Of a stretch of DNA of 64,000 bases, positions 8,701-45,462 are shown in pieces. Numbering within the stretch: position 1 is the first letter of the stretch; each line of letters starts with the position of its first letter. Location of the stretch: positions 295,045 through 359,044 of the IMG/VR virus record IMGVR_UViG_3300035698_035310, one strand, 5' to 3'. Position numbers and translations under genes: made by a program. The notes beneath the pieces were generated by a model, which saw only the letters and a program-made list of their open reading frames with translations, was not told where the DNA came from and searched no databases.

Positions 8701-9126
8701 ATGTTGTAGATTAATACTGCTACCAAAGACGAAACCTTTGATCCCATGATGGATCAAACATTGCGCATGTATGCGATTGAGCGCGGTGATTTGGATATGA
8801 CAAGAGGGAAGTGTTCTTCTCAAACAGGTCATGCATACAAACTTCTAACAAAAAATGTGGTAGAGAATAACCCAACACTATCGAACGAATACTTCGATGA
8901 TGGCATGGGAACTAATGTCACACTTAAATCCAAAAATCTAAGTCAACTTGAACGTGCCTATGACAATGCATTGGACGCGGGGCTTCCTTGTGTTTTAATC
9001 ACTGACGAAGGGCATATAATGCCGCCACACTTCGATGGTGAACCTATTGTCACGGTTATAGGCATTGGCCCATGTAGGCGTGCCGAAGTTCATCACATCA
9101 CCAAAAAATTTAACTGTGTAAAATAA
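8701..9126 (+). CDS. pth2: Peptidyl-tRNA hydrolase, Pth2 family; in-frame TAG at codon 3 (8707-8709)
   Basis: RGDLDMTRGKCSSQTGHA, ITDEGH and TVIGIGP are Pth2 motifs. RBS AAGGA precedes ATG 8701 (ATG TTG TAG ATT...), which is in frame with the RBS-less ATG at 8746. Confidence 0.8.
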
Positions 9127-18238: not shown

Positions 18239-18913
18239 TTATTCAATCATCCCTTTTTCAATATAAGATATAGTCCATTTTTTATGAGTATAACAACCTC
18301 TACCACCTCTTGCGATAGCCGCCATCCTTCCTTTATTGAGATTATATTTTCGGCAAAATCTAGTGAGATTTATTCTCGTAAAGCGCGTACCTTCGGGACT
18401 TATAGCCGTGAACCACTTTGCTTTACTATTTCGCACCGAATCTTTTTTATTCATTCCACCCATTATCAATGGCTTCCCCAATCTATTTGGGCGCGGAACG
18501 CCAGCAGCAGCCTTACCGGTTTGCTTTCTACCCGCGCAACTATACGCGGTTGGATTATGATTATATCCATTATCCAACCAAATAAATGGTTTATGTTTGT
18601 CAAGATAACGTTGCTCACAATCAATCAATATCTGTTTCGCTACATCTGGATGTACATCATCAATATCGCACTCTTCTAATATTTCCCAAATAAACCCACT
18701 AGAGCCATATTTTCGCAGAGCATTGACAAATGGCATATGAGCATGCTCTGTTCTTTTTATTGAATATTCATGACCAGCCCAACGGTTGCGAATGTCCTTT
18801 CCGCTACCGATATATATTTTTCCATTAGTTTTATTAGTTATTATATAGACACCAGCAATACCAGATGGTATAGATGTTGTTATGGTCGTGTGTTTGAATC
18901 TAAATTTTTTCAT
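18239..18913 (-). mobile_element. Free-standing GIY-YIG homing endonuclease
   Basis: GVYIITN..NGKIYIGS...R...H and EQRYLD...GYN motifs; antisense insertion right after the ATPase. Confidence 0.85.
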
Positions 18914-21490: not shown

Positions 21491-22666
21491 ATGAGCAAAT
21501 CAACTAAATCCACTTTCGTGCAAGAGCGCACAGATAAGTATTTCACAAAAACTAAAAATATTGTAGATATGTTTGGCGATAAAATCGTTACATATGCAGT
21601 ATTTCAACGTCGTGCAGTTATAGCAGCAACCAAGCTAGCGGTAGAACTGATCAAAGAACATTGTCCAGAGGCTACCGTGGTAGTTCATTACGAAGATGGC
21701 ACGCTTGTTCCACCACAATCCAAAATTATGTCTATCACTGTATCAATGAGTAAATTTGTTGAACTTGAAACATTGTGCCTACAGCGTGTTGGATTTACCC
21801 AAGTATGCGCCTACAATGCTTATAAGATGAGTATGGCACTTCCACACGTTCCATTCATGGATATGCACGGGCGACACGGGACAGGCGACGATATGATGAT
21901 TGCTGCCGCTTACGGTGCTTCCGTTGGATCGCGAACTGCGCGGATGCAGGGCGCTAAAGGTTTTGTTGGTACTTCCAACGATCTTACCGCACACTACTTC
22001 CCTATCAAACAAGGTATCGGAACTATGCCACACGCTGCTGTTGGTTACGCTGGAAGTAACATGAGGGCGATGGAAATGTTTGTTGAAGCCAATCCTGATG
22101 ACAAAAACCTTGTTTCATTGGTTGATTACTTCGGAAAAGAAACAACCGAAGCACTTGAAGTATCCAAATGGTTTTATGATAAAGAATTGGATAAAAAAGG
22201 TAAAACTTTGGGTATGCGCCTTGATACACACGGTGGTCGTTTTGCCGAGGGTCTTGATTATGAAAAATCAGTTGAGATTGTATGTAACTGGCTTAAAGTA
22301 AATCCTACCGATGAATACGCTGCTGTGCGTAAGGTTATTGGTGATGCGGTATTCGATGCTGCGGCTGATGACTATATCGACAAGGTTCGTAAAATTTTGT
22401 TTGGAACTGGTGTAAGTGCGGCAAACATTATCAATATGCGCGAACAGTTGAATAACAAAAAGTTTAACAATGTCGCAATTGTTGCAAGTTCTGGCTTTGA
22501 TTTGTTCAAGTGTACCATTATGGCACAAGTGAACGCACCAATCACCATGGTCGGAACCGGCTCATTCTTGCCTAAAACCCTAAGTGAAACATATGCAACT
22601 GCTGATATCGTTCAATATGGCGATACCCCTTCCGTTAAGGTTGGACGCGAATGGTTGCTGGATTAA
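21491..22666 (+). CDS. Nicotinate phosphoribosyltransferase-like protein (PncB/NAMPT superfamily)
   Basis: TDKYF, GTS, GTMPHA, LVDY, RLDTHG, ASSGF and GTGS type II PRTase motifs; operon with nadE, nadM-like and pncA. Confidence 0.8.
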   Translation: MSKSTKSTFVQERTDKYFTKTKNIVDMFGDKIVTYAVFQRRAVIAATKLAVELIKEHCPEATVVVHYEDGTLVPPQSKIMSITVSMSKFVELETLCLQRVGFTQVCAYNAYKMSMALPHVPFMDMHGRHGTGDDMMIAAAYGASVGSRTARMQGAKGFVGTSNDLTAHYFPIKQGIGTMPHAAVGYAGSNMRAMEMFVEANPDDKNLVSLVDYFGKETTEALEVSKWFYDKELDKKGKTLGMRLDTHGGRFAEGLDYEKSVEIVCNWLKVNPTDEYAAVRKVIGDAVFDAAADDYIDKVRKILFGTGVSAANIINMREQLNNKKFNNVAIVASSGFDLFKCTIMAQVNAPITMVGTGSFLPKTLSETYATADIVQYGDTPSVKVGREWLLD

Positions 22667-23047: not shown

Positions 23048-23318
23048 AAAATATGAATTGCGTGATGGTGAAGAATACATTGATGAATATATCAATGAAG
23101 AAGGAAAGCACGTAACCATCGTTAAAGAATCGAGTGGTAATATAATTCATGGATGGGTTATGGACATCGATCCAGCAGATTATGCACTTATTGAGAAAGC
23201 CGCAGCACTGGAAGGTGTGGATATACAAGATTTTATTGACAGCGCTATAAAATCTGCTATACTGTTAGCAATAGACGAAGTTAATATGAAATCAGCAATA
23301 GAGGATATATCAGACTAA
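23037..23318 (+). CDS. Hypothetical protein (possible ribbon-helix-helix)
   Basis: GAGGA RBS before ATG 23037; DYALIEKAAALEG...DFI. Confidence 0.55.
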   Translation: MPIEKYELRDGEEYIDEYINEEGKHVTIVKESSGNIIHGWVMDIDPADYALIEKAAALEGVDIQDFIDSAIKSAILLAIDEVNMKSAIEDISD

Positions 23319-23609: not shown

Positions 23610-24101
23610 ATGATTAAACGATTCATACATATGCTTTGCCGGTGGTTTAAAATTCACGCTTATGATTTTCCGATGGCTGGAAATACTGCAACTATGATTC
23701 TTTATAATCCCGAGAGAAAAGAGGTATTGTTGGGGTTGAGAAGTGAAGATTCTGATGCATTTCCAAATCGTTGGTCACTTCCCGGTGGATATCTTAATGT
23801 TGGTACGGAACGCATGACGAGAGTTGCATCACGTGAAACAAAAGAAGAAGTTAATCTTGATATCGATGAATGGCGGTGGAATATATTTTATCTTGATGAT
23901 GAAATCGGAACCGACCCACGATATACACAAGTCATTAATATTTGTTATGATGCAATTGTGAGCGAGGCTCATGAATATGATAACCCTGTAGCGGGAGATG
24001 ACCTACGAGACGTTGAATGGTATTCAATTGAAAATGCTTTAAAAGTTGATCTACCATTTAATCACAATACTATTTTACGAGAGTTTGTTCAACAACTCTA
24101 A
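23610..24101 (+). CDS. NUDIX hydrolase (ADP-ribose pyrophosphatase-like)
   Basis: WSLPGG...RETKEE Nudix box; DPR, AGDD and LPFNH resemble the NadM-Nudix/NrtR ADPRase domain. Confidence 0.85.
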   Translation: MIKRFIHMLCRWFKIHAYDFPMAGNTATMILYNPERKEVLLGLRSEDSDAFPNRWSLPGGYLNVGTERMTRVASRETKEEVNLDIDEWRWNIFYLDDEIGTDPRYTQVINICYDAIVSEAHEYDNPVAGDDLRDVEWYSIENALKVDLPFNHNTILREFVQQL

Positions 24102-24166: not shown

Positions 24167-25219
24167 ATGACAAAACCAAAAAACACAATACTTGAAATTA
24201 GTCGACAAGATCAAATGGGCGCACTATCGCCGTGGTTTGATAAACATCTTGATATTTGTATTGATGATGGATATTTCGGCAGTGAAAAACTTCTAACAGA
24301 TATAGGCAATCATATCATCGAAGATTTGATAGCATATCGCATACAAACCGGTATTAGCACAGTCATTCTTGGTATGAGTGGTGGCGTCGATAGCGCATTA
24401 ACCGCCGCATTATTTAAAAGAGCAGGGTGGAAAGTGATTGGGGTTACAATGCCCATACATCAAGACCCTGAAGAAACAACACGTGGCGTTGATGCATGTG
24501 AAGCACTAGGCATCGAACATAAACATATCGATTTAACCTCGCTGTATAACGATGCCACTACTTCATTGGGTGATTTGGATGGTTTATTAGACGATGCGAA
24601 CGAAACAAATAAAGCAGTTCTTATTCGCCGTGGCAACGTTAAAGCACGGTTGCGTATGATTACATTATACAACCTTGCTGCAATGCATGGTGGTTTGGTT
24701 GCAAGCACTGATAACTATTCCGAACTAGCCGCTGGCTTCTGGACATTGCATGGCGACGTGGGTGATTTAAGCCCCATACAAAGCCTTACTAAGTCTTGGG
24801 AAGTGCCAATGCTTGCAAAACTATTCGGCGTTCCTGAAGAAACGTGGCGTGCAAAACCAACCGATGGATTGGGGGTTGATGCTGGTGATGAAGCACAATT
24901 CGGATTCACTTATCTTGAACTCGACCTTATGCTGTTAGCGATTGGTGATTTTTCTGCTGATGGATATAAAGACGATGAAATGCAAGAATTGGGTGGTGTC
25001 AATCGTGAAAATTTATTCAAAGTTATGGACGGTGATATCGATAAAGATGGACGCGCCACAACCGTGTTTAATAAATTATTGGATAGAATGGGAAGTTCGT
25101 GGTTTAAGCGTCACGGAACTGTTAATATAAAGCACCCATATGATAGCAGCCGTTATAATAGATTGGAACGCGTCGATTATGATCAATTTGTTCCACAAGT
25201 TATAAAAAGGAGCAACTGA
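24167..25219 (+). CDS. nadE: NH3-dependent NAD+ synthetase
   Basis: GMSGGVDS, GNVKARLRM, T.HGD..D and KPTDGL...DE; no glutaminase domain. Confidence 0.9.
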   Translation: MTKPKNTILEISRQDQMGALSPWFDKHLDICIDDGYFGSEKLLTDIGNHIIEDLIAYRIQTGISTVILGMSGGVDSALTAALFKRAGWKVIGVTMPIHQDPEETTRGVDACEALGIEHKHIDLTSLYNDATTSLGDLDGLLDDANETNKAVLIRRGNVKARLRMITLYNLAAMHGGLVASTDNYSELAAGFWTLHGDVGDLSPIQSLTKSWEVPMLAKLFGVPEETWRAKPTDGLGVDAGDEAQFGFTYLELDLMLLAIGDFSADGYKDDEMQELGGVNRENLFKVMDGDIDKDGRATTVFNKLLDRMGSSWFKRHGTVNIKHPYDSSRYNRLERVDYDQFVPQVIKRSN

Positions 25220-25220
25220 T

Positions 25221-26171
25221 ATGTCCCAATGGAAAAATATTAAATGTATCGAAAGTGCCGAAGGTAATGTAAGCAAGTTCGTATACACAAATGATACCGC
25301 AGTAGCAGAATCAGTTTTATACAAATATCCTGATTACAAATCACGGACAGTTATTTGTTGCTCAACAATGAGTGGATGTCCAGTTGGATGCCGCTTCTGT
25401 GGTGCTGGCGACTATTTCGTAAAATCACTTTCCGGTGAAGAAATCATTTCACAGGTTAAGTATTCCATCGATCAAACTGGTGTCGATCCTGCTACAATGG
25501 GTAGATTGCAAATCATGTTTATGTCTATGGGTGAGCCACTTCTTAATAAGAATGGTCTATCTGAAGCATTGAAGAAATTATATTTCATGTACCCAAATGC
25601 TGCATTGCTTATTTCCAGCATTGGACCAGATGTTGATTATGAATGGTTGATGGAACTAAGTGAACGTATCCCCACTATTGGATTACAGTTTTCCGTTCAT
25701 GAAGCAACCGATGAACGCCGTGACGCACTTATTCCATTCAAGAAAAAATTAACATTGGATGGTATTACGAAAGTTGGCGCTGAATGGAATAAACGAACCG
25801 GACGTAAACCGTATTTCAATTACTGTGCGGGTGATGAAAACTCATCTAGTGGCGATGCATTTAAAATGCGCAAACTGTTTGATCCAACCATTTGGAATGC
25901 GACAATAAGTGTTATATGTGAGCGAAATGAAGGTCTTCCAGCACGCAACGAACATCAACGCGAGTTGGCTTGTGATTTTTCTAGCAAATTACTTGAACTT
26001 GGTTTTGACGTCAGAGTTTTTGATCCAGCCGGTCAAGACGACACTGGCTCAGGCTGTGGTCAATTATGGTTTGTTCAGCGATGGATGGTAGACAATCCAG
26101 AGAAATCTAAACCAAGCATAGGTCATGGCATGGATAAAATACACGTGCCTACATTGGAGGTGGCATCATGA
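25221..26171 (+). CDS. RlmN/Cfr-like radical SAM methyltransferase (short form)
   Basis: ICCSTMSGCPVGCRFC, MSMGEP, SVH and terminal GCGQL; both RlmN-type catalytic Cys equivalents are present. Confidence 0.8.
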   Translation: MSQWKNIKCIESAEGNVSKFVYTNDTAVAESVLYKYPDYKSRTVICCSTMSGCPVGCRFCGAGDYFVKSLSGEEIISQVKYSIDQTGVDPATMGRLQIMFMSMGEPLLNKNGLSEALKKLYFMYPNAALLISSIGPDVDYEWLMELSERIPTIGLQFSVHEATDERRDALIPFKKKLTLDGITKVGAEWNKRTGRKPYFNYCAGDENSSSGDAFKMRKLFDPTIWNATISVICERNEGLPARNEHQRELACDFSSKLLELGFDVRVFDPAGQDDTGSGCGQLWFVQRWMVDNPEKSKPSIGHGMDKIHVPTLEVAS

Positions 26172-26845
26172 GCATACACAGAGTAGGGCTATCAGTAATG
26201 CGTGCACAACCATTTCACAAAGGGCATGAAGCAATCATTAACACGATGATATCTGAATGCGAAACTGTGGTTGTGTGTTTAGGTAGTGCGCAAAAATCAA
26301 GAGAAAAACATGATCCATGGACAATTGAAGAACGCATCGATATGATTCAACGTGTATATGGTGCATATAACAATAAAGGTGAATTTCTTGGTAGTAGAGT
26401 TAAAATCATTCCGTTGACTGATATTGGGGCTGCTACTCCACAAAAGTGGGTTAGTTATATTGTTGAAAAGATTGAGAAACTCGGTCTTCCTGAACCGACT
26501 GATTATTTTACTGGTTCAGAGTTTGACGCTGCATGGTTTAGAGATCATTTTGCCGCCGATTGGCGTGCATTAGAAGGACATTATTATAATCAATCTAAAG
26601 AGAAAGTAAATGGACAACCATCTGTTGAAGGCAATTCATATGAACGATATGTGGGTGAAAATGGAATATTTAGACGTTTACATAACATCCAACGACAAGA
26701 AAACAGAATTCCATCTGCTACGGAATTGCGTGGATTTATGGAATTGCGGTTGAATGATTGGAAAGAATGGATTGCAACTGTAAATCATGAAACACTTGAT
26801 GAAACATATCCAGACGAATTTAAAGTTCCAATGGATAACGAATAG
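26168..26845 (+). CDS. NadM-like nicotinamide/nicotinate mononucleotide adenylyltransferase
   Basis: RAQPFHKGH (HxGH), GSAQ...DPWT..ER and SATELR. Confidence 0.85.
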   Translation: MSIHRVGLSVMRAQPFHKGHEAIINTMISECETVVVCLGSAQKSREKHDPWTIEERIDMIQRVYGAYNNKGEFLGSRVKIIPLTDIGAATPQKWVSYIVEKIEKLGLPEPTDYFTGSEFDAAWFRDHFAADWRALEGHYYNQSKEKVNGQPSVEGNSYERYVGENGIFRRLHNIQRQENRIPSATELRGFMELRLNDWKEWIATVNHETLDETYPDEFKVPMDNE

Positions 26846-26876: not shown

Positions 26877-26933
26877 AAACATAGCGTTACCATTAAGGAA
26901 TGCTAATCATACTACCAATTGGAGGAGTATAAA

Positions 26934-27599
26934 ATGAGAAAATTTGAACAAGGAAATTTTAAACTTGCAGTAATCGTAGACGCACAAGAGGATTTTGTGT
27001 TGTCGACAGGTGCATTGCCCGTTCCGGGTGCAGAGGCATTGATTCCAGATATGGAAGAATACCTTAAAAATATAACATTGGAAAATGGATATGTAGGTGC
27101 GCTGTTTACCGCAGACACGCATAATGAAAAAGATTATCCTGAATCCAAAGAAGCCAAAGGCGATCCTGATGCCGTTGAACCAATTCCAGGTTTTCCACCA
27201 CATTGCATGCAAGGAACTGATGGTTTTAAATTTGCCATTAACCCTGCTAACGTAGCAATGGATAATAATGTTGGGCGTTTTATTCTCAACAAAGGCGTAT
27301 TTAATATGTGGGAAGAAGATAACATCGTTGTTCGACCTTTGGTGTTGGATGGTGAGCCGGTTTCTTATGGCGGTGCACAAGACCGAAATGAATTCTTCGA
27401 AACACTAAAATCAAATGGAATCGAAGACGTTGAAATCGTTGGATTTGCTGCTGATTACTGTGTTATGTGGGCAATTGCTGGATTTGTTGCACGCGGATTC
27501 AATGTTACACTTTATGATAATCTTACTGCTGGTATCGCAAAAGATATTCATGCAGTGGTGGAAACAGAATTTTCTAAAGAGAACGTACAAGTTCTTTAA
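26934..27599 (+). CDS. pncA: Nicotinamidase / pyrazinamidase
   Basis: GGAGGAG RBS; VDAQEDF, DTH, PPHC..GT.G, KG and GFAADYCV catalytic motifs. Confidence 0.9.
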   Translation: MRKFEQGNFKLAVIVDAQEDFVLSTGALPVPGAEALIPDMEEYLKNITLENGYVGALFTADTHNEKDYPESKEAKGDPDAVEPIPGFPPHCMQGTDGFKFAINPANVAMDNNVGRFILNKGVFNMWEEDNIVVRPLVLDGEPVSYGGAQDRNEFFETLKSNGIEDVEIVGFAADYCVMWAIAGFVARGFNVTLYDNLTAGIAKDIHAVVETEFSKENVQVL

Positions 27600-27613
27600 A
27601 GAAAATATTGAAA

Positions 27614-27641
27614 CAGTGGAGGGAATTATACCCCTCCACTG
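27614..27641 (+). terminator. GC-rich hairpin after pncA (no U tract)
   Basis: CAGTGGAGGG-N8-CCCTCCACTG. Confidence 0.5.
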
Positions 27642-27644
27642 CTC

Positions 27645-27974: not shown

Positions 27975-28344
27975 TATTTTACATATTCAAAAATGGGTAT
28001 ATCATATTGCGTTGAGACTTTATGGATGGAAATCCATTGATACTGCGCCAACAGACGGAACCAGTGTTATAATTCTCGAAAATATGCAATTAGAATATTG
28101 GAATGTTTTCGAAGCGCAATATATTAATGAAGAGCCATTACCTGGATGGAGAGGGGTATATGTAGCAAAATATGTTGGCGCAGATGAAACTAAACCACAT
28201 TATGTATCAAAAACTCTCGTCACAATTCCTGAATATTGGAAACCGATGCCAAAATCACCACGGTTTTATAAATTATGGTGTTTCGCATGCAATGATATTC
28301 AAGTAAAAATAGAGGAAGAAGAAGAAAAATGCCAACATACTTAG
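27967..28344 (+). CDS. Hypothetical protein (WxxIxTAPxDG / DUF551-like)
   Basis: WKSIDTAPTDGT...YWKPMPK; likely start ATG 27967. Confidence 0.65.
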   Translation: MFDILHIQKWVYHIALRLYGWKSIDTAPTDGTSVIILENMQLEYWNVFEAQYINEEPLPGWRGVYVAKYVGADETKPHYVSKTLVTIPEYWKPMPKSPRFYKLWCFACNDIQVKIEEEEEKCQHT

Positions 28345-28787
28345 AAGCAATAAACACAGATAATTTTATTTTAACAGGAAATAGAAGAACTATATTTTTA
28401 GCTGGTGGCATCACTGGATGCGTAGATTGGCAAAAAGTATCTAAAGATGCACTAATGGCATCAAACAAATATAAAATAATTTGCAATCCACGCCGTGCAG
28501 ATTTTGACGTAACTGATCCAACTGCATCTGAAAAACAAATTAAATGGGAAGCTGATCATTTAAAAATATGCACAGATATATTGTTTTGGTTTTCTAGTGA
28601 AACCATCCAACCAATTGCATTATTTGAATTGGGGAAATACCTCAATGAAAAAGATAATATTTTTGTTGGCTGCGATCCAGATTATTCAAGAAAATTTGAT
28701 GTTATTACACAGGTTGGTATATATAGACCAGACATCAAAGTGTGGGATAATTTAGATGATATGATGGAACATATTGTTTCATCATGA
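28329..28787 (+). CDS. Nucleoside 2-deoxyribosyltransferase-like protein
   Basis: IFLAGGI...DWQ, NPRR, QIKWE and PIALFELG. Confidence 0.8.
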   Translation: MPTYLEAINTDNFILTGNRRTIFLAGGITGCVDWQKVSKDALMASNKYKIICNPRRADFDVTDPTASEKQIKWEADHLKICTDILFWFSSETIQPIALFELGKYLNEKDNIFVGCDPDYSRKFDVITQVGIYRPDIKVWDNLDDMMEHIVSS

Positions 28788-29695
28788 AAAATAAACACAC
28801 TCCATTATATGATCCAGAAATAGCCAAAAAAATAACTGAAATTGGTAGACGTATTTTATATGAAATGAAAAAGGAAATGAAAAAAATGGAATCATTATTT
28901 GATGTAAATGGTCTAATGTTTTGGACGCAGCGCGAAATACGATTGCGCGAATCGTTTGCAAAACATTTTTCAGAAGAACTACACAATGCATTATTATATG
29001 AAAATAGAGCATGGGAATTTATTCAATTTGAAGGACCGCAACTAACCCCACGTTCAGCCATTAATCCCAACTATACAAATGATGATATATGGGTTCAACA
29101 AAACCATAGTAATATGAAAATAGGTGAACCATTTCCTGAAATTAGTAGCGATTTAGTTCTTCGACCCGAAACAACGCCTTCATCATACGTATATGCTAGA
29201 CATTTGTTAGACACCCATAGTGGAATTAAGCCACCATTTGTCATATGGCAAACTGGTAAAAGTTTTAGACGCGAACAAGATCAGGTGATAAAAAATATGC
29301 GCCTAAAAGAATTCTATCAACAAGAATTTCAATGCATATATACCGCTGATACAAAAAATGATTACCAAGAAGCCGTATTAGAGCCAGTTAGAAAAATGAT
29401 TGGTGAAATGGTAAACCTACCAACACGATTGGTGGAAAGCGATAGATTGCCTTCTTATAGCAAACGTACAATGGATGTGGAAGTTTGGATATCTGATAAC
29501 ATTAACGAGCCAGGATTCATATCTGACACTGGAAGATGGATGGAAGTTTGTTCGATATCTAAACGAACTGATTTTCCTGGTACAGTGAAATTCCAAACCA
29601 AAAATAAAATAGTCGAAAAAGATTTAGAAGTGCTTGAGGTCGCAATCGGATTAGACAGAATAAATTATTGCTTTGAACAAGGAAATATAAAATAA
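28784..29695 (+). CDS. Class II aaRS catalytic core, glycyl-tRNA synthetase (alpha2 type)-like, lacking the anticodon-binding domain
   Basis: LRPET, QTGKSFRRE (motif 2), RLKEFYQQEFQ, EVCSIS.RTDF and VLEVAIGLDR (motif 3), then the stop. True start may be ~28885. Confidence 0.75.
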   Translation: MKNKHTPLYDPEIAKKITEIGRRILYEMKKEMKKMESLFDVNGLMFWTQREIRLRESFAKHFSEELHNALLYENRAWEFIQFEGPQLTPRSAINPNYTNDDIWVQQNHSNMKIGEPFPEISSDLVLRPETTPSSYVYARHLLDTHSGIKPPFVIWQTGKSFRREQDQVIKNMRLKEFYQQEFQCIYTADTKNDYQEAVLEPVRKMIGEMVNLPTRLVESDRLPSYSKRTMDVEVWISDNINEPGFISDTGRWMEVCSISKRTDFPGTVKFQTKNKIVEKDLEVLEVAIGLDRINYCFEQGNIK

Positions 29696-29783: not shown

Positions 29784-30410
29784 TTGGATCAAGAACAAAT
29801 GAATTTAATACCAATGGTAGTGGAAACTACAGCAAAAGGCGAACGAGCCTATGATATATTTTCGAGAATGTTGCGTGAAAGAATTATCTTTCTTAATGGA
29901 CCTGTGAATGATACCGTAGCCAGTTTGGTTGTGGCACAAATGTTATTTTTGGAATCAGAAAATCCATCAAAAGATATTTCTTTTTACATCAATAGCCCCG
30001 GTGGCGTAGTTACTGCGGGTATGGCAATTTATGACACTATGCAATATATTCGCCCTAATGTATCCACTGTTTGTATTGGTCAAGCAGCATCCATGGGATC
30101 GTTGTTATTGGCGGCTGGTGCAGAAGGTAAGCGTTTCGCACTACCTAATGCAAGAATTATGATTCACCAACCATCAGGCGGCGCACAAGGACAGGCATCT
30201 GATATTGAAATTCAAGCAAAAGAAATCATTCGCATAAAGAAAGATTTGACACAAATTTACGTTGATCACGGCGTTAAAGAAAAATCATATGAAGATTTTC
30301 TTGCAGCAATGGATCGTGATAATTTTCTATCTGCCACTGAAGCAGTTGAAGAATGGGGTATAATTGATGCGGTGGTTGATTCAAGACCGCCAGTTGAAGA
30401 AAACGATTAA
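29784..30410 (+). CDS. clpP: ATP-dependent Clp protease proteolytic subunit (host-like)
   Basis: LIPMVVE...[29 protein letters not shown] and MDRDNF. Confidence 0.95.
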
Positions 30411-31529: not shown

Positions 31530-32540
31530 ATGTCATTTATCAAATGGACAGATATTGAAAATTTTCATAATGTAAGAAAAGCTGCTGTAAAATATTACAG
31601 CATTTCAGAACCAATCACATATCGTGGAAAAATAAAACTCCATGGAACAAATGCAGGCATTATCATTAAACCCAATGGTGATATATTTGCACAATCGAGA
31701 AGTGGTATCATCGGAACCGGTAACGATAATGCAGGGTTTGCCCAATACATAGAAAACACCAAAGATTATTGGTCTACATTAGCTACCACTGAACAAATCA
31801 CGATATTTTGCGAGTGGTTTGGTAAAGGCATTCAAAAAGGCGTTGCTGCTTCGCAGATTGTTTCCAAACATGTTGCTATTTTTTCGATTCAAATCGGCGA
31901 ATATGACGAAGATGGCAATGCCGATATGATTATTGAGCCATCAGAAATCGAAAAATATATTGCAGTTGATAGTAAACCCGATAATGTTCATATTCTTCCT
32001 TGGTATGGTGAAAAGATTATCATCGATTATACAGATACTACATCGTTGGAAGTCATAGTTGAGAAACTTAACAAAGAAGTGGAAACGGTAGAAGCATGCG
32101 ATCCTTGGATCAAAGACGTGTTTGGTATTAGCGGAACCGGGGAAGGTTTGGTTTATTATCCAATCAGTTTTTCTAAAAATGGTGTAATCAATCGCTGGCA
32201 TTTAAGCCGTTATTTGATGAAATGCAAAGGCGAGAAGCACAAAGTTCAGAAGGATAGAAAGGCGGTTATTCTCGATCCTGAAATAGTTGCTTCCTCGAAT
32301 GCGTTTGTTGAAAAGTTTGTCACAGAATCCCGATTGGAACAAGGCGCAACGGAAGTCAATCGCGGTGTTCTTGATTTTGATACAAAACTTATTGGACCAT
32401 TTTTGAAATGGTTCAATGGTGATGTTAATAAAGAATGCACCGATGAACTTGAAGCTTCTGGACTTGAATGGAAACAAGTTGCCAAGGGTGTTAGCACTGC
32501 TGCACGCAATTGGTATATTGAAAAGTCGAAGGAACTTTAA
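31530..32540 (+). CDS. RNA ligase, Rnl2 family
   Basis: KIKLHGTNA (motif I), DNAGFA, CEWFG.GIQKG, EGLV, K.K and the C-terminal VTESRL domain. Confidence 0.8.
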   Translation: MSFIKWTDIENFHNVRKAAVKYYSISEPITYRGKIKLHGTNAGIIIKPNGDIFAQSRSGIIGTGNDNAGFAQYIENTKDYWSTLATTEQITIFCEWFGKGIQKGVAASQIVSKHVAIFSIQIGEYDEDGNADMIIEPSEIEKYIAVDSKPDNVHILPWYGEKIIIDYTDTTSLEVIVEKLNKEVETVEACDPWIKDVFGISGTGEGLVYYPISFSKNGVINRWHLSRYLMKCKGEKHKVQKDRKAVILDPEIVASSNAFVEKFVTESRLEQGATEVNRGVLDFDTKLIGPFLKWFNGDVNKECTDELEASGLEWKQVAKGVSTAARNWYIEKSKEL

Positions 32541-33480: not shown

Positions 33481-35160
33481 ATGGAAAACCTAAATGATTT
33501 AAAGTCGTGGCCTTTTGTTGAGGCGCGGCGTCTTGTAGAGCATACACAAGATAAGGAAGTGGTTGTTTTTTCCACTGGATATGGTCCGTCTGGTCCGCCA
33601 CACATTGGAACCTTTGGTGAAGTTGCACGAACTGTAATGGTTATGAATGCATTTCGACAATTATCCGATAAGCCAATGCGTCTTATTGTATTTTCAGATG
33701 ATATGGACGCTTTGCGTGCCATTCCAGAAAATGTACCCAATCCAGATAACATGCTTGATGATTTTATCGGCATTCCACTGTCTTGGATTCCTGATCCATA
33801 TGAAACACATGATAGTTATTCTGCACATAATAATGCAGCACTTTGTGATTTTTTAGATTTACACGGTTATGATTATGAATTTATAATGTCATCGGATTGC
33901 TATGAAGGTGGTGTATTTAATGAGACATTGCGATTATTTGCGTCACGAGTTGATGAGATCAGCAACATTATTACGCATGATTATGGTATCAATGGCGGAA
34001 ATCGTAAGGACACTTATTGTCCATTTCTTCCAATTAACACAATCGAGGGAACAGTTTTCGAGTTGGATGAATGGGAAATTATTGAGGTTGAAAATATGTC
34101 AATTGGTTCTTATGGAAATGGCGAGATTGCACCGTCGCCATTTCTTGCATTGCGATATACGAATGCAAGCGGTGGGGTAGGAATGTGCAATATTGATAAC
34201 GGCAAGGTTAAGCTGCAATGGAAGGCAGATTGGCCTATGCGATGGATTGCTCTAGGCATTGATTATGAAATGCATGGCAAGGATTTAATTGGGTCTGCGC
34301 AAGTTGGACAACGTATTTGCAAGTTGCTTGGTAAGAAGGCACCGCTTAACTATATGTATGAACTATTTTTAGATGAAGATGGTGAAAAGATTTCTAAGTC
34401 TAAGGGAAATGGATTGTCATTGACCGATTGGATGAGCTATAGCACCCCTGCGTCTGTGGCATATTATATGTTTCAGAACCCACGCAAGTCGCGTAAGTTG
34501 CACTTTGGTGTTATTCCGCAAATGACAGACGACTATTTGAAGATGTTGGATAAGTATATCCAAGAGCCAAGCATGGATAATCCAGTTTGGCATATCCATA
34601 ATGGCGATGTTCCTACGGTTGGTTCACCAGTAATGTTCAGCATGATTCTAAATTTGGTCAGCATTACTGATACCCAAGACCCATATGTATTGATTGAGTT
34701 CATTCGGAACTATGCGCATGGCGCTTCGTTCAAGAATCCAATTCTTCGTGATTTGATCAATGGTGCATTGAACTATTACACAACCGAAGTTCTTCCTAAG
34801 AAGACATATCGTGCTCCAACTGAAATGGAGCGTGTCGCACTTATTTCTTTACATGGGTCATTGCGTATGGTTCAAGCGCAACATAATGCTATGCTTGAAT
34901 TCATGAATACAAATATGGTAAAGATGGATGCCATCAATGAAGCAGGTGGCGAGAAGGCTGTATTGGAAGAAGCAATCACTTCGGTAACATATGAAGTAGG
35001 CAAGGTTCATTTCGGCGAAGAAAAGGATTCATTGCGAAAGTATTTCAAGAGTGTATATGAAATAATCATGGGTCAATCAAGTGGACCTAGATTGCCAGTA
35101 TTCATTGTGATGTTGGGCATTGATGAATTTTTGAGAATTTTAAAGGAAAAGATTCAATAA
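33481..35160 (+). CDS. lysS: Lysyl-tRNA synthetase, class I
   Basis: WPFVEA, TGYGPSGPPHIG, KLQWKADW, YEMHGKDL, KISKSKGN and GQSSGPR. Confidence 0.95.
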   Translation: MENLNDLKSWPFVEARRLVEHTQDKEVVVFSTGYGPSGPPHIGTFGEVARTVMVMNAFRQLSDKPMRLIVFSDDMDALRAIPENVPNPDNMLDDFIGIPLSWIPDPYETHDSYSAHNNAALCDFLDLHGYDYEFIMSSDCYEGGVFNETLRLFASRVDEISNIITHDYGINGGNRKDTYCPFLPINTIEGTVFELDEWEIIEVENMSIGSYGNGEIAPSPFLALRYTNASGGVGMCNIDNGKVKLQWKADWPMRWIALGIDYEMHGKDLIGSAQVGQRICKLLGKKAPLNYMYELFLDEDGEKISKSKGNGLSLTDWMSYSTPASVAYYMFQNPRKSRKLHFGVIPQMTDDYLKMLDKYIQEPSMDNPVWHIHNGDVPTVGSPVMFSMILNLVSITDTQDPYVLIEFIRNYAHGASFKNPILRDLINGALNYYTTEVLPKKTYRAPTEMERVALISLHGSLRMVQAQHNAMLEFMNTNMVKMDAINEAGGEKAVLEEAITSVTYEVGKVHFGEEKDSLRKYFKSVYEIIMGQSSGPRLPVFIVMLGIDEFLRILKEKIQ

Positions 35161-35682: not shown

Positions 35683-36333
35683 ATGGCAAAAACAGAGTTA
35701 AGACGAAAACATCCATATTTTGGAAAGTTTAAATTCAAAATAAATGTATATAATAAAGATTGGGTTAAAGATTATAAATTGGCATATCCTACTTTTTTAA
35801 CTGATATTACAGATATAGAAAAAGAACAATACATAAAAGTAAAAGATTATTTAACTAAATATTGGAAAGTCGAAAAAGATTTTAGATGGAATGATAATTG
35901 GAATGTGTATTTAAGAGATGCTGATGTATATGATCATGTTCTATCAAGATTTCCGACGTTTTTATCAAAAGTTATTAGACCAGCACCAGGTTATGAGGAT
36001 TTAGAAGGAAGGGGGGCGCTTAATGAACATATATTATGGTATGGAAAATTTTCATATAAAATATCATTGAGAAATGTCGATAGCACAACAAATCATTTAT
36101 ATAAAAAATGGTGTATGGAAAATTTAGAAAGCGATATAAAATACTCAACCGGTTATAGTGATACAAGTTTTTATTTTATGAATTCATTTGACGCGATGGC
36201 ATTTAAATTAAGATTTGGTGATTATGTTAAAGATACGTTTATTGCCGATAAAGACGAAGCTGCTATACAATTAAGAAATCGAATGGATCAAGCTATTCAA
36301 GAATATAACAACTACATGGAAGGTGAATCATGA
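35683..36333 (+). CDS. Hypothetical protein (DAxxFKL family)
   Basis: YFGKF.FKI and WYGKF.YKI duplicated domains; KWC...FYF...DAMAFKL. Confidence 0.7.
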
Positions 36334-37292
36334 CAAAACACAATAAAAATGAAATAATTTTAATATCTGGAAATAGCAACAGACCACTATCCGAAGAAAT
36401 ATCGGATATACTTGATATCCCATTATCAAAAGTTGAAATATCTTCATTTTCGGATGAAGAAACTAAAATAGAAATAAGTGACAATGTGCGTGGTGAAGAT
36501 GTATATGTTATACAACCAACATCACAACCGGCGAACCAAAACCTAATGGAACTACTAATCACCATAGATGCCCTTAAGCGTTCATCTGCGCGGCGTATAA
36601 CGGCTGTAATACCATATTATGGATATGCACGCCAAGATGCAAAACCAGCCCCCAGAACACCAATAACGGCAAAATTGGTAGCCGATTTGATTACTACTGC
36701 TGGTGCTGACAGAGTTCTAACGATGGATTTTCACTCACGCCAAGCACAAGGGTTTTTTAATATTCCAACAGATAACCTTTTCGCACAACCATTTTTCGTC
36801 ACGGACATTAAAAAACAATTCAAAAAATTAGATAATGTTATTATCGTATCACCAGATGTTGGTGGCGTGGTCAGAGCAAGAGCGCTTGCTAAGAAAATAA
36901 ATGCCGATCTTGCCATTATCGACAAGCGTCGTGAAAAAGCAAACGTTAGTGAAGTTATGAATATCATTGGCGATATAGACGGTCATGATTGTATCATTAT
37001 TGACGATATGGTAGATACCGCAGGAACATTATGCAATGCTGCTGATGCGTTGATAGAAAAGGGCGCTAAATCAGTTCACGCATATGCAACACATGGCGTA
37101 TTGAGTGGACCGGCAACTGAAAGACTTAACGCATCAGAATCATTATCATCTTTAACTATCACAAATAGCGTACAATATCCATACAATGGCGAAGCATCCG
37201 ATAAAGTTAGAATAGTATCCATTGCTCCATTGCTTGCAAGGGCGATAAGTAGAATAGCCAAAGAATCTTCAGTTAGTGAGTTATTTGAATAA
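36330..37292 (+). CDS. prs: Ribose-phosphate pyrophosphokinase (PRPP synthetase)
   Basis: [26 protein letters not shown] and DDMVDTAGT. Confidence 0.95.
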
Positions 37293-37305: not shown

Positions 37306-38358
37306 ATGAAACAATTATTAATAAGTATGTTTATAATTTTTTTGACGATAGGAACAGCAAACGCGGATTATATATTTGTTGTCCCACAAAAACCCGGTGC
37401 AGGGACGTCGCAGTGGGCACAAATAGTAGCCAAAGAATTAGAAAAATATTTAGGTGAAAAAATAAAAATAAAACATATTCCTGGTGCTCGTGATCGTGCT
37501 GGATTTAAAAAATTTCACGATACATTAAGGTTTGATGATAAGACAGTTATGGTATCGCATGGCGGTAACGCAATTAGTTATCTAACTGAACCAGTTGGAT
37601 ACGATTATAAAGAATATGATTCTATTGCAATCATGAATTTTAATATCGCGGTAGCGCATCGTTCAGATTTGGATTGGCGGGGTAATGATAAAGTGTCGTT
37701 TGCTGCTGGTTCGGGTATGGTTCCAGAGGCACTTGCTATAGCGATGCTATTATGTGGCGCAGATGCACCCGCGTGTTGGAATGACCGTGTGATATGGGTT
37801 CGCGGTATGTCGGGTTCCGAACGTCGGTTGGCATTTCGACGTGGTGAAATTTCAGGAACAAGAGAGAATGTTGCTGCTTATAAAAAACATGTAGTCCCCA
37901 TTGTAAAATCTGGTGATGCAAAGCATTGGTTCAATCATGGTATGTTGAATCCTGCTACGGGTGAATTTGGTGCAGATACCAATCTTTCTTTTCCGCACAT
38001 GGAAGCATTGTATGAAGAACTATGGGGTGAAAAACCATCTGGTGGTTTTTATGATGCGTATAAGTTAGCCAAGGCTTGGAGAGATAGTGTTCAAAAAGCG
38101 TTGTGGGTTAATAAAGGAAATCCTAATCGTGATATATTAGTGCAAGCAGTTAACGATATGTTGAATGATCCTGCATCTATGGCGAACCTTCATAAAAAAA
38201 TGGGTTCTTATCCATGGAGAGTTGGTGATGCAGGGAATGATTTTATGGACGTTTTATACAACATGATTTCAAGCGACGCACTTAAAACATTAGTCGATTT
38301 TGAAAAAGATGTATTAAGGTTGGATGCTGTGTTTAATGAGAAACGTGTAGAGAAATAA
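37306..38358 (+). CDS. TctC/Bug-like periplasmic substrate-binding protein
   Basis: Signal peptide (…ANA-D); VVPQKPGAGT..W and HIPGA; convergent with a TctA gene. Confidence 0.7.
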   Translation: MKQLLISMFIIFLTIGTANADYIFVVPQKPGAGTSQWAQIVAKELEKYLGEKIKIKHIPGARDRAGFKKFHDTLRFDDKTVMVSHGGNAISYLTEPVGYDYKEYDSIAIMNFNIAVAHRSDLDWRGNDKVSFAAGSGMVPEALAIAMLLCGADAPACWNDRVIWVRGMSGSERRLAFRRGEISGTRENVAAYKKHVVPIVKSGDAKHWFNHGMLNPATGEFGADTNLSFPHMEALYEELWGEKPSGGFYDAYKLAKAWRDSVQKALWVNKGNPNRDILVQAVNDMLNDPASMANLHKKMGSYPWRVGDAGNDFMDVLYNMISSDALKTLVDFEKDVLRLDAVFNEKRVEK

Positions 38359-38369
38359 TATCATACGTA

Positions 38370-39809
38370 TTATGAATATTCTAACCGATTTTTATTCTTG
38401 ATGCCTATATACAAAATAACTATTGCCATAATTGCAATACCTATAAACATCGGTCTACCAAGAAGCATATCCAAAGTATATAACGACGACATTTGATAAC
38501 TTAAATTTACTATTTTATCGGATAATATAAAACCTATTAACAATGATGGTCGACTAAAATTAAACTTTTTAGCGAGTAACCCAACCACCGAAAAACCACA
38601 TAACATAATGATATCTTCCCATCCACCAGTATACTGTAATGTTGCCCACATAATAATAATTATAAGAAATGGAAAATAATATTTATATGGGACATATGCA
38701 ATATAAGTTATATATTTCACTGCCCACAAACAAATCAATCCTGTGATTAATGTTCCTAAAATGAATCCTAAACTCATCATTCCAAAAAACATCGAATCTG
38801 CTGCTAGAGCCAATGTTCCCATTTCAAAATTCAAATACATAAACAACGCCATAAGTATCGCAGCGAATGGCGCACCGGGAATTCCAAATAAAACAGTCGG
38901 AATAAATGATGACGCTTTTTGTGCATTATTTGCACCCTCGCATCCGATCACGCCTTTGATATTTCCATCACCAAATTTTTCATTGGGGTTACTAGCTACT
39001 GCTTGACCATATGCTAACCAATCCGCAACCGCGCCACCCAAACCCGGAAGAATGCCAATAAATGAACCAATGATTCCACCTTTGGCACCCAATTTCCATT
39101 CCTTGAAAGCAATTTTTATGCCATCAATTCTTTGTTGTGTGTGATCAATTTTGTTGTCTTTAATAGCGGTATATTTTGACTTCAGACCAGCAAGCAGTTC
39201 TGGTATTGCAAATAAACCTGCTACTACCGGAATTATTTGTATTCCATCCTCTAAATACGCCCAACCAAACGTAAATAATGGCGATGCATTGGCATCCAAT
39301 CCTATAACTCCAAACCACACTCCAATGGATAACGCAATCAATGATCTGAGCCAATACTTAGATGAAATAAAACTAACAGTAAAAAATGCTAAAATTGTAA
39401 ATGCCCATAGTTCTGGAATACCTAAAATTAAAATTATTTTTGCATAATATGGCATCAATAGGAACGCCATACAGCCCCATACAAGCCCGTTTATAGTGCT
39501 GGTAACGATTGCTGCCGATAATGCATAAGTAGCCTTCCCTTGGCGTGCTAATGGAAATCCATCCACCATTGTAGCGGCGGCAGAGTTTGCCCCAGGTATT
39601 CCCAATAAAACAGACGTGAAGGTATCACCAATTGTAGATGATGCCACAACCGCGACGCAAAAAAGAACACCAAGATATGGATTTGCTGCGAATATATGTA
39701 TAAACGAAAAAACTGCAACCAAGCCTGTTGTTGCGCCAACAGACGGAATAATACCAATAACCAATCCATAGGCTATACCCATTAACAATGTAATAATTAT
39801 TTCAATCAT
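38370..39809 (-). CDS. tctA: Tripartite tricarboxylate transporter large subunit TctA
   Basis: GIIP..G, LLGIPG...AAT..DGFP.A..G, GILPGLGG, EGANNA and LFGIPG; highly hydrophobic; start likely 39809. Confidence 0.85.
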   Translation of the reverse strand: MIEIIITLLMGIAYGLVIGIIPSVGATTGLVAVFSFIHIFAANPYLGVLFCVAVVASSTIGDTFTSVLLGIPGANSAAATMVDGFPLARQGKATYALSAAIVTSTINGLVWGCMAFLLMPYYAKIILILGIPELWAFTILAFFTVSFISSKYWLRSLIALSIGVWFGVIGLDANASPLFTFGWAYLEDGIQIIPVVAGLFAIPELLAGLKSKYTAIKDNKIDHTQQRIDGIKIAFKEWKLGAKGGIIGSFIGILPGLGGAVADWLAYGQAVASNPNEKFGDGNIKGVIGCEGANNAQKASSFIPTVLFGIPGAPFAAILMALFMYLNFEMGTLALAADSMFFGMMSLGFILGTLITGLICLWAVKYITYIAYVPYKYYFPFLIIIIMWATLQYTGGWEDIIMLCGFSVVGLLAKKFNFSRPSLLIGFILSDKIVNLSYQMSSLYTLDMLLGRPMFIGIAIMAIVILYIGIKNKNRLEYS

Positions 39810-39883
39810 ATATTTTCCAATAATAAATAAATCTATAGATTTATTTATATTATACAAAAAATAAAAAATAATAGGCTGCAAAC

Positions 39884-45339: not shown

Positions 45340-45462
45340 AAATTATTGGGATATCTATTTTTCACTTGACAAAACATTATATTCATTGTATAAATAATAT
45401 CATATAAGCCATATTTTACAGGTGTGGCAAACACCCCAATAGGAAATATGGAGATTATCATG

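Follow-up and report, generated by a model that had tools for sequence, protein, structure and literature searches.

A giant phage carries a shortened relative of the RNA-methylating enzymes RlmN and Cfr inside an operon for rebuilding NAD, and relatives of this protein are adjacent to, or fused with, NAD-salvage enzymes in many unrelated phages and bacteria, which suggests a so far undescribed role in NAD metabolism rather than the ribosome or tRNA methylation typical of this class. The gene was examined in a window of 64,000 nucleotides (positions 295,045 to 359,044 of IMG/VR record IMGVR_UViG_3300035698_035310). Its open reading frame starts with ATG and encodes a radical SAM (rSAM) protein, here P0001. 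The original prediction described an RlmN/Cfr-like radical SAM methyltransferase without the N-terminal RlmN domain, tightly coupled to NAD genes on both sides, and this observation proved to be correct. Its interpretation, that the enzyme may C-methylate an adenine in tRNA or rRNA or in a nucleotide cofactor such as NAD or ADPR, possibly making the latter NADase-resistant, was only partly supported.

Table 1. Features of the NAD-related region, with positions in the window
Feature	Position	Strand	Size	Characteristics
Short RlmN/Cfr-like class-A radical SAM protein (P0001)	25221..26171	+	316 aa	Cluster cysteines C53/C57/C60; catalytic pair C46/C279; MGEP at 103-106; no HhH2 N-domain; family-specific C-terminal tail after residue 283
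NAD synthetase NadE	24167..25219	+	350 aa	Stop lies 1 nt before the rSAM start; 144 bits
NMN/NaMN adenylyltransferase (NMNAT), archaeal/NadM type	26168..26845	+	225 aa	Start overlaps the rSAM stop (ATGA, 26168-26171)
Nicotinamidase PncA, isochorismatase fold	26934..27599	+	221 aa	Length from the ATG at 26934; a TTG start at 26919 is also possible; DxQxDF, PPHC and DYCV motifs present
Nudix hydrolase	23610..24101	+	163 aa	First recognisable NAD-related gene of the tight block
Divergent type II phosphoribosyltransferase-like protein, candidate PncB-like step	21491..22666	+	391 aa	Weak hits only: QRPTase_N 24.8 bits, below cut-off; PDB 2i14, E 1e-4; conserved upstream of the block in a relative
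Best sigma-70-like promoter match upstream of the block	23236..23263	+		11 of 12, TG extension; consensus match only
Palindromic hairpin just after pncA	27611..27644	.	14-bp stem	Possible end of the transcription unit
Ribose-phosphate pyrophosphokinase (Prs), a PRPP supplier	36330..37292	+		10 kb downstream; may feed the same pathway

The gene is translationally coupled to both neighbors: an AGGAG lies 9 nt before its ATG, and the overlapping NMNAT start is preceded by GGAGG. A scan for promoters and terminators gave no more sites in the region than shuffled sequences, and the two elements in Table 1 are therefore only descriptive. Close relatives (76-80% identity) keep the order Nudix-NadE-rSAM-NMNAT-PncA, whereas a megablast of the cassette against INPHARED phages returned no match.

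P0001 possesses the cluster motif and both catalytic cysteines of class-A radical SAM methyltransferases. The cluster motif CX3CX2C occurs as CPVGCRFC, and Pfam Radical_SAM (PF04055) scores 32.4 bits against a cut-off of 29.5. The two additional cysteines that define class A, a resolving cysteine seven residues before the cluster motif and a methyl carrier in the C-terminal tail, are present in ICCS (residues 45-48), with C46 aligned to RlmN C118 and Cfr C105, and in GCGQL, with C279 aligned to RlmN C355 and Cfr C338. Over 186 diverse members, C46 is 93% conserved, the cluster cysteines 97-98%, and C279 95%. The AlphaFold model (pLDDT 88.8) has a (beta-alpha)6 core, and the top 11 Foldseek hits are all RlmN, Cfr or an RlmN-like enzyme (E 1e-18 to 1e-13, TM 0.58-0.71), with the next folds above 1e-7. 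However, the NCBIfam RlmN model matches only over profile positions 76-342 of 355, no residues align to RlmN 1-82 in the multiple alignment with E. coli RlmN and Cfr, and the model starts directly with the beta-sheet extension; the roughly 75-residue N-terminal HhH2 domain is therefore absent. Representatives with N-terminal extensions (P0126, P0128, P0129) have no recognisable domain there, and their extensions, which are unlike each other, may reflect start-site calls.

P0001 is neither RlmN nor Cfr. It scores 74.8 bits against 290, and 52.1 against 633, for the RlmN equivalogs (TIGR00048 / PRK11194), and 70 bits against 530, and 64 against 550, for Cfr (NF000424 / TIGR04432). In the phylogenetic tree the family forms a separate branch (support 93), and the Cfr clade (support 97) excludes it. 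Other short phage RlmN-like proteins (Kehishuvirus, Arno162, Vibrio D479, Moorella MTATph1) lack both catalytic cysteines, form a different clade and were excluded from the family. The family is a large, mostly phage-borne sister clade of about 4,600-7,300 members, with thousands of metagenomic sequences, mostly viral; cultured phages that carry the gene include Stenotrophomonas ANB28, Salmonella Arash and Vibrio phages. Current pipelines label its members as '23S rRNA (adenine2503-C2)-methyltransferase', a label that is probably wrong and could also mislead resistance-gene screening. Literature searches on RlmN-like and radical SAM proteins in phages and in connection with NAD-salvage genes found nothing on this family.

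The linkage to NAD genes extends well beyond this window. The refuting condition set with the original prediction, that homologues are unlinked to NAD genes, was not fulfilled: NAD-salvage genes are the only strongly recurrent neighbors of the family. In IMG/VR, 12 of 80 loci have NAD genes, NadV being directly adjacent in 10, and these loci are scattered on the rSAM tree with at least seven changes forced; in GTDB genomes, 12 of 67 loci have NAD genes. In a pooled census of 146 loci (90 groups below 80% identity), four of the five commonest neighbor families within 4 kb are NAD-salvage enzymes: NAMPT/NAPRTase in 19 groups, NMNAT/Nudix/NrtR in 18, PncA in 9 and NadE in 7. The only comparable other family is DNA methylase, in 9 groups, and everything else is found in 4 or fewer. 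In total, 23 of 90 groups have at least one NAD gene, whereas 67 have none within 4 kb, and complete small phages and a Rhizobium prophage carry the gene alone. Of 21 phage records holding both rSAM and NAMPT, 8 have them 2 kb or less apart, where 0.95 are expected under random placement and 0 of 1e6 simulations reach 8, although phage accessory genes cluster in islands, which inflates adjacency statistics. NAMPT is encoded by 21 of 50 rSAM-bearing records, while NARP2 is reported in about 1.1% of phage genomes (PMC13464706). Nevertheless, the rSAM is not a core partner of NadV: it appears in 5-6 of 80 NadV loci (about 6%) and ranks about 13th among their neighbors. A scan of 50 phage records for isochorismatases found only one clear case (record G037, locus L077), and there the gene lies next to the rSAM.

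Moreover, family members occur as natural fusions with NAD-related domains. Protein P0310 is PncA (1-192) joined to rSAM (199-506); the rSAM part is 58% identical to P0001 and keeps both cysteines, and the gene lies in an operon of pncB, pncA~rSAM and nrtR (locus L253). The ESM Atlas holds a 58-member Isochorismatase+Radical_SAM cluster. Protein P0138 is an rSAM-Nudix fusion followed by NAPRTase-family (nadV) and NMNAT genes. A predicted complex of rSAM and PncA scored 0.00, which is neither support for nor evidence against binding.

The main alternative, considered possible but less likely, is that the protein is still an RNA adenine C-methyltransferase acting on tRNA A37, 23S A2503 or another site on host or phage RNAs, tuning or protecting translation during infection, and that the NAD genes are neighbors only because phage auxiliary and anti-defence genes cluster together. 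Homology and fold point to RlmN/Cfr only, both catalytic cysteines are conserved, every characterised class-A enzyme methylates RNA (A2503 or A37), and no small-molecule substrate is known for the class. Some Cfr RNA contacts are kept: R249 maps to the invariant R195, K250 to K/R196 and Y252 to F/Y198. Of 50 rSAM-bearing phage records 40 carry tRNA genes, the gene lies inside or beside tRNA arrays in phage ANB28 and loci L034, L079 and L082, and the window region also holds aaRS-like, RNA-ligase, PNK and PTH2 genes. In Saccharibacteria and Woesearchaeota-binned genomes it is the only RlmN-like hit. On the other hand, the window contains no tRNA, five complete phage genomes with the gene have none, and tRNA genes lie within 8 kb in 15 of 80 IMG/VR loci, within about 1.5 kb in only about 7 of these 80 by our reading, and within 6 kb in 8 of 67 GTDB loci, an association judged weak compared with that of the NAD genes. 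The missing HhH2 domain is the one that in Cfr/RlmN binds RNA tertiary structure (bioRxiv 10.64898/2026.02.27.707579), the family is acidic (median pI 5.5, median net charge -7), and several Cfr/RlmN backbone contacts are replaced by invariant family residues (R327/R344 to F267, S328/K345 to D268, R184 to A127). The fusions, and membership of pncB/pncA/nrtR operons in cellular genomes, are hard to explain for an RNA enzyme. Many hosts already have RlmN, detected as second hits, so that a duplicate activity would presumably add little. The indirect indicators of RNA methylation are mixed, and the tRNA/rRNA alternative is weakened but not excluded.

The best explanation, held with no more than even confidence, is that P0001 belongs to a third clade of class-A radical SAM C-methyltransferases that has lost the RNA-recognition domain and has been recruited to nicotinamide/NAD salvage. 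By analogy with the established RlmN/Cfr mechanism, one SAM would methylate C279, and a second would be cleaved at the [4Fe-4S] cluster to the 5'-deoxyadenosyl radical, which would abstract H from the methyl-Cys; the resulting methylene radical would add to an sp2 ring carbon of the substrate, and C46 would resolve the covalent adduct, leaving a C-methyl group. The corresponding variants RlmN C118A and Cfr C105A stay covalently linked to their substrate. The substrate, inferred from genomic context only, would be a free metabolite of the PncA/PncB/NMNAT/NadE or NadV/NatV routes rather than 23S A2503 or tRNA A37, the candidates being nicotinamide or nicotinate, NMN/NaMN, NaAD/NAD+ and ADP-ribose. 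The analysis does not show that the target is the adenine of NAD or ADPR, or that the product is NADase-resistant; the tightest partners, PncA, PncB/NadV and NrtR, handle or sense the pyridine/ADPR side, so the target ring could as well be the pyridine. In this view the megaphage gene is co-translated with a deamidating NAD-rebuilding cassette, in which PncA, NMNAT and NadE are clear and the phosphoribosyltransferase step rests on weak hits, and phages use such pathways against NAD-depleting defences. However, class-A enzymes are slow and spend two SAM per methyl, which makes bulk conversion of a millimolar NAD pool implausible, and only a low-abundance or highly potent product would make sense. 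The analysis itself establishes the fold (as predicted), the catalytic residues, the loss of the N-domain, the operon structure, the recurrent linkage and the fusions, whereas the methylation reaction, the substrate class, the product and the physiological role are inferences in the absence of biochemical data.

A more far-reaching possibility, which is tentative, is that the family is the first class-A radical SAM methylase with a small-molecule substrate and C-methylates a ring carbon of a pyridine nucleotide or its precursor: the pyridinium ring, or adenine C2/C8, of NAD+/NaAD/NMN, or nicotinamide itself. The resulting NAD-type analogue would change the outcome of NAD-centred phage-host conflict, for example as a poor substrate, an inhibitor or a decoy precursor for TIR/SIR2 NADases, which would explain why phages and NrtR-regulated salvage operons carry it. 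Class-A methylases are known only as RNA enzymes, RlmN for housekeeping and Cfr for multidrug resistance, and the association of this clade with NAD-salvage enzymes, including fusion to nicotinamidase, suggests either a new substrate class for this chemistry or an unknown step or branch in NAD metabolism. As NAD depletion and reconstitution (NARP1-3) are a central battlefield between phages and bacterial immunity, the enzyme is a concrete candidate for a new counter-defence or cofactor-editing mechanism.

Two further readings appear less likely. The protein could act on an NAD-derived macromolecular or signalling species, such as the adenine of 5'-NAD-capped RNA, ADP-ribosylated targets or TIR/cyclase-derived ADPR signals, or on (d)ATP-type nucleotides for nucleic-acid modification. 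The fused or adjacent Nudix domains, which also process NAD caps and ADPR, an ADP-ribosylglycohydrolase next to the gene in locus L231, a distant rSAM-HD (dNTPase-like) fusion, P0213, and the DNA N6/N4 methylases neighboring 9 of 90 groups are compatible with this doubtful reading. However, the tightest partners belong to pyridine salvage and not to RNA capping or DNA modification, DNA methylases are ubiquitous in phages, and P0213 is a distant relative (147 bits) in an uninformative context. It is very unlikely that the gene is a selfish or neutral passenger, or has a non-catalytic, for example regulatory or scaffolding, role. Its distribution is patchy, with only 67 loci in 185,579 species genomes and none in 200 further genomes of the Saccharibacteria class, which speaks against a core gene there, and homing endonucleases lie nearby in relatives, but cluster and catalytic residues are strongly conserved over thousands of sequences at 45-80% identity and the gene is translationally coupled within operons.

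Among characterised enzymes, RlmN (dual-specificity 23S rRNA A2503 / tRNA A37 C2-methyltransferase; PDB 3RFA, 5HR7) shares the predicted fold (Foldseek E 1e-17, TM about 0.7), the cluster motif, the MGEP SAM motif and both cysteines. It differs from P0001 in sequence (about 20-23% identity), in having the HhH2 domain, and in its context of housekeeping genes instead of NAD salvage. The members of the family, in contrast, are acidic, have a phage-borne, patchy distribution, line the nucleotide pocket with different invariant residues (Y34, Y36, M99, S230, F267, D268) and carry an extra conserved C-terminal tail. Cfr (23S rRNA A2503 C8-methyltransferase, conferring antibiotic resistance; PDB 9P0P, cryo-EM complex in bioRxiv 10.64898/2026.02.27.707579) is the best PDB sequence hit (E 1e-15), with the same two-cysteine mechanism and some conserved RS-domain RNA contacts (R249/K250/Y252 mapping to R195/K196/F198). 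However, P0001 lacks the N-domain that anchors H91/H92, R184, R185, R327 and S328 are replaced, and there is no evidence that it is a resistance gene.

With respect to the phage NAD+ reconstitution pathways (NARP2, comprising NadV and NatV; NARP1; NARP3; summarised in PMC13464706), the gene sits directly beside NadV/NatV in at least 10 IMG/VR loci, but no radical SAM component is part of any described NARP, and 75 of 80 NadV loci lack the rSAM. The window does not encode NARP2: no NAMPT (PF04095) was found in the 359-kb record, NMNAT and Nudix are separate genes, and the deamidated route with PncA, a phosphoribosyltransferase-like protein, NMNAT and NadE is found instead. In bacteria, the operon of locus L253, the arrangement PncA, rSAM, NrtR (locus L215, Ornithinimicrobium murale) and the Saccharibacteria arrangement pncB-pncA / rSAM / nrtR-nadE place the family inside nicotinamide-salvage operons (pncA-pncB-nrtR) controlled by NrtR, a family of Nudix-related regulators, and clear complete Preiss-Handler-type clusters with the rSAM exist in loci L225, L029, L200 and L253; an rSAM gene has not been described as a member of these regulons, and no paper combining NrtR and radical SAM was found. 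Finally, viperin-type radical SAM enzymes, the next-best structural matches after SuiB, are similar only at superfamily level (E about 1e-6, TM about 0.5) and catalyse a different reaction (dehydration, without a methyl-Cys pair), but they set a precedent that a radical SAM enzyme can act on a free nucleotide in virus-host conflict, with large effect from small amounts.

The 64-kb window is the end of a 359,044-bp IMG/VR virus record, and the same genes lie on a 570,549-bp metagenomic contig (ENA ERZ27315719 k141_202852), of which IMG/VR holds only 359 kb and which it classes as 'provirus'. The genome is AT-rich, is transcribed almost entirely on one strand and carries 32 tRNA genes outside the window. 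It is best read as a megaphage, the other part of which was probably trimmed as host. Two of the 32 tRNA genes have the amber-suppressor-like anticodon CUA, but no sign of recoding was seen in the window ORFs, which were read without an alternative genetic code.

The ORF of interest encodes a 316-aa protein (P0001), and all of the motifs named in the original prediction are present: ICCS, in which C46 aligns to RlmN C118 and Cfr C105; CPVGCRFC, which provides the cluster cysteines C53/C57/C60; MGEP at residues 103-106; and GCGQL, in which C279 aligns to RlmN C355 and Cfr C338. The Pfam Radical_SAM model just passes its cut-off (32.4 against 29.5 bits), whereas the NCBIfam RlmN and Cfr models match only from profile position about 72-76 onward, at 75 and 70 bits against cut-offs of 290 and 530. 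The HhH2 N-domain is therefore missing, as is also shown by the alignment with RlmN and Cfr and by the AlphaFold model (pLDDT 88.8). The stop codon of nadE ends 1 nt before the ATG of the radical SAM (rSAM) gene, with an AGGAG 9 nt upstream of the ATG, and the rSAM stop overlaps the NMNAT start as ATGA, preceded by GGAGG. The original observation of an RlmN/Cfr-like gene coupled to NAD genes on both sides is thus confirmed in full. The coordinates of the gene, its neighbors and other features noted in the course of the analysis are listed in the table below.

Features of the window, the phage record and a related locus (window coordinates unless stated)
Coordinates	Strand	Feature	Remarks
G000:C1:295045-359044 (IMG/VR record)		Whole window
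about 8746-9126; 28784-29695; 31530-32540; 33481-35160; 41308-42531; 44110-45339		Cluster of translation and tRNA-repair genes: peptidyl-tRNA hydrolase PTH2; class II aaRS-like core; RNA ligase (PF09414); class I LysRS; T4 Rnl1-like ligase; PNK/phosphatase (AAA_33 + Metallophos)
18239-18913 (-); 45424-46056 (+); 49873-50757 (-)		GIY-YIG and HNH homing-endonuclease genes	Scattered through the region
21491-22666		PRTase-like gene	Weak; upstream of the NAD block
23610-24101		Nudix
24167-25219		NadE
25221-26171	+	RlmN/Cfr-like rSAM	P0001
26168-26845		NMNAT
26934-27599		PncA
28329-28787; 29784-30410; 38370-39881 (-)		Nuc_deoxyri_tr2 (nucleoside 2-deoxyribosyltransferase-like) gene; also a ClpP-like protease and a TctA-family transporter on the opposite strand	Nuc_deoxyri_tr2 gene lies just after the NAD block, conserved there in relatives
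36330-37292		Prs	Downstream of the NAD block
37306-38358		350-aa ORF	Immediately after Prs; no Pfam or PHROG match
from about 50.3 kb	+	Second, unrelated radical SAM protein with a B12-binding domain	628 aa; downstream of DHFR and ThyA
G000:C1:28369-28446 and 221822-221895 (IMG/VR record, outside the window)		tRNA genes, anticodon CUA
L231:6828-7913 and L231:4862-5995 (Woesearchaeota-binned contig)		Quinolinate synthase NadA and ADP-ribosylglycohydrolase	Flank the rSAM

A Foldseek search with the model placed RlmN, Cfr and an RlmN-like enzyme first (E 1e-18 to 1e-13, TM 0.58-0.71), with other radical SAM folds following far behind. In a tree with RlmN, Cfr and other phage RlmN-like proteins, the family forms its own clade (support 93), which is separated by long branches from the RlmN+Cfr clade. 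A second group of short phage proteins (262-291 aa; loci L095-L099, from Moorella phage MTATph1, Kehishuvirus 'tikkala', a crAss-like phage, Pectobacterium phage Arno162 and Vibrio phage D479) has lost both catalytic cysteines and the C-terminal CGQL tail; it represents another clade, and its chemistry must differ. The family itself is large: word-search hits at E<=1e-3 numbered 4,651 for P0001 and 7,305 for the member at L215 (an Ornithinimicrobium locus), nearly all of about 310-330 aa. There are 200 loci in IMG/VR, and a profile search returned 8,729 hits among 50% representatives, although most of those are RlmN/Cfr proper. In 185,579 species genomes, however, only 67 loci were found, scattered over Proteobacteria, Actinobacteria, Saccharibacteria, Bacteroidota, Clostridia, Planctomycetota and archaeal bins, and none was found in 200 further genomes of the Saccharibacteria class. 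It is thus a mobile, chiefly viral gene. The catalytic pair and the cluster cysteines are 93-98% conserved over 186 diverse members, which implies that the inferred methyl-Cys and radical chemistry is under selection; a role without catalysis is regarded as very unlikely.

In the window, the gene sits in a tight block in the order Nudix, NadE, rSAM, NMNAT and PncA. Relatives with 76-80% identical rSAM keep the same order, even where a small ORF or a GIY-YIG endonuclease has been inserted; in a relative, a homing-endonuclease gene is inserted between NMNAT and PncA without breaking up the cassette. Among 80 IMG/VR loci at 55-69% identity there is no universal neighbor, but NadV (NAMPT) is directly adjacent on the same strand in 10 loci (gaps of 8-1759 nt), usually with a NatV-like NMNAT-Nudix beside it, and locus L029 of this sample holds NadE, PncB, Nudix, NMNAT, rSAM and PncA in another order. 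These loci are scattered over the rSAM tree, with 10 state changes, at least 7 of which are forced by well-supported branches. Of 50 long records, 21 encode NAMPT, which lies 2 kb or less from the rSAM in 8 and 22-107 kb away in 13. Random placement predicts 0.95 adjacent cases, and none of 1e6 simulations reached 8, although these statistics assume random placement, an assumption that phage accessory-gene islands violate. For comparison, NARP2 is reported in about 1.1% of phage genomes (PMC13464706), but large genome size confounds that comparison.

In an independent sample of GTDB genomes, 12 of 67 loci again carry NAD genes within 6 kb. These include PncA, rSAM and NrtR with overlapping stops and starts in Ornithinimicrobium (L215); NMNAT-PncA-PncB-NadE-rSAM in an Alphaproteobacteria-binned MAG (L225); rSAM-PncA-PncB in Saccharibacteria (L214); pncB-pncA divergent from the rSAM, with nrtR-nadE convergent on it, in three further Saccharibacteria loci (L200, L208 and L210); NadA-rSAM-ADP-ribosylglycohydrolase-GNAT-NadE in a Woesearchaeota-binned MAG (L231), which extends the association beyond salvage enzymes; rSAM-NadE in a Muribaculaceae MAG (L232); and rSAM-PRTase-NAMPT in a Methanobacterium-binned MAG (L204). 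As MAG bins may contain phage contigs, 'cellular' contexts such as the Saccharibacteria and archaeal bins may be viral or mobile. When both samples were pooled and collapsed to 90 groups below 80% rSAM identity, the neighbor families within 4 kb were NAMPT/NAPRTase (19 groups), NMNAT/Nudix/NrtR (18), DNA N6/N4 methylase (9), PncA (9) and NadE (7), with every other family present in 4 or fewer. Overall, 23 of the 90 groups have at least one NAD gene nearby; conversely, the three quarters of family groups without a NAD neighbor remain a point in favor of an RNA substrate.

Fusions were found as well. P0310, a 510-aa family protein, is a nicotinamidase domain (residues 1-192, catalytic motifs intact) joined directly to a family rSAM (residues 199-506), the latter being 58% identical to the window protein and keeping both Cys. 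It lies in an overlapping operon of pncB, pncA~rSAM and nrtR, next to a transposase and LigA. The ESM Atlas holds a 58-member bacterial cluster of Isochorismatase+Radical_SAM proteins of about 520 aa that match the model at TM about 0.8. The search of representatives, carried out because family scans had left the function open, yielded two other architectures: P0138 (468 aa) is rSAM-Nudix, followed by NAPRTase-family and NMNAT genes on a phage-like contig, a rare fusion represented by one cluster with two sequences, and P0213, a distant member, is fused to an HD/dNTPase-like module. A complex prediction for the rSAM and PncA returned no verdict in either direction.

Several features of the protein bear on its substrate. 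In Cfr and RlmN the HhH2 N-domain, absent here, carries a positive patch and reads RNA tertiary structure (bioRxiv 10.64898/2026.02.27.707579). The family is uniformly acidic, with a median pI of 5.5 and a median net charge of -7, while RlmN and Cfr range from pI 6.6 to 10.1. Moreover, several residues that bind the RNA backbone or the target nucleotide in Cfr/RlmN are replaced by family-invariant residues: R327/R344 by F267, S328/K345 by D268, N288/N307 by S230, Cfr R184 by A127, and Cfr S187 (T in most others) by L130. Others are kept, with R249 mapping to R195, K250 to K/R196 and Y252 to F/Y198. The alignment is less certain in the C-terminal tail, and this comparison is treated as suggestive only. 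The possibility that the enzyme methylates RNA after all is considered less likely, yet it is supported by the retained contacts, by the fact that all precedent is RNA, by the position of the gene within tRNA arrays in some phages, and by the richness of the window itself in translation and tRNA-repair genes.

The analysis establishes the fold (from a predicted model), the conserved residues and the gene context, whereas every functional statement beyond these, including catalysis, substrate and product, is inferred. The chemistry is very probably that of RlmN/Cfr, with methyl-Cys279, the 5'-deoxyadenosyl radical, methylene-radical addition to an sp2 ring carbon, and resolution by Cys46. The context argues that the target belongs to nicotinamide/NAD salvage, and a small NAD-pathway metabolite is the favored substrate, although this reading is held to be only about as likely as not. 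NAD-derived macromolecular or signal species, or (d)NTPs, are considered unlikely targets. The original prediction, which proposed C-methylation of an adenine in tRNA/rRNA or in a nucleotide cofactor such as NAD/ADPR, is partly supported. Because the closest partners (PncA, PncB/NadV and NrtR) handle nicotinamide or nicotinate, or sense ADP-ribose, the attacked ring may be either adenine, as homology suggests, or the electron-poor pyridine or pyridinium ring, which is inferred to be chemically plausible for a nucleophilic carbon radical. Class-A enzymes are slow and cost two SAM per turnover, from which it is inferred that a product acting in small amounts is more plausible than bulk conversion of the NAD pool.

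Databases name these proteins 23S rRNA methyltransferases, and no paper was found linking an RlmN-like radical SAM enzyme to NAD genes or to NrtR regulons. While class-A radical SAM methylase chemistry is already known, it is inferred here for a new clade, with a new architecture (no N-domain; PncA and Nudix fusions) and a new pathway context, and a small-molecule substrate, if proven, would be a first for the class. The PRTase-like, Nudix, NadE, NMNAT, PncA and Prs genes of the window represent a putative phage-encoded deamidating (Preiss-Handler-like) NAD route, in which the PRTase step rests on weak hits. The pairing of Prs with an unknown ORF is reminiscent of the NARP1 layout (Adps/Namat), but nothing supports that as yet. 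As a whole, the route differs from the described NARP1 (Adps/Namat), from NARP2 (NadV/NatV), no NAMPT being present in the record, and from NARP3 (PnuC/NadR).
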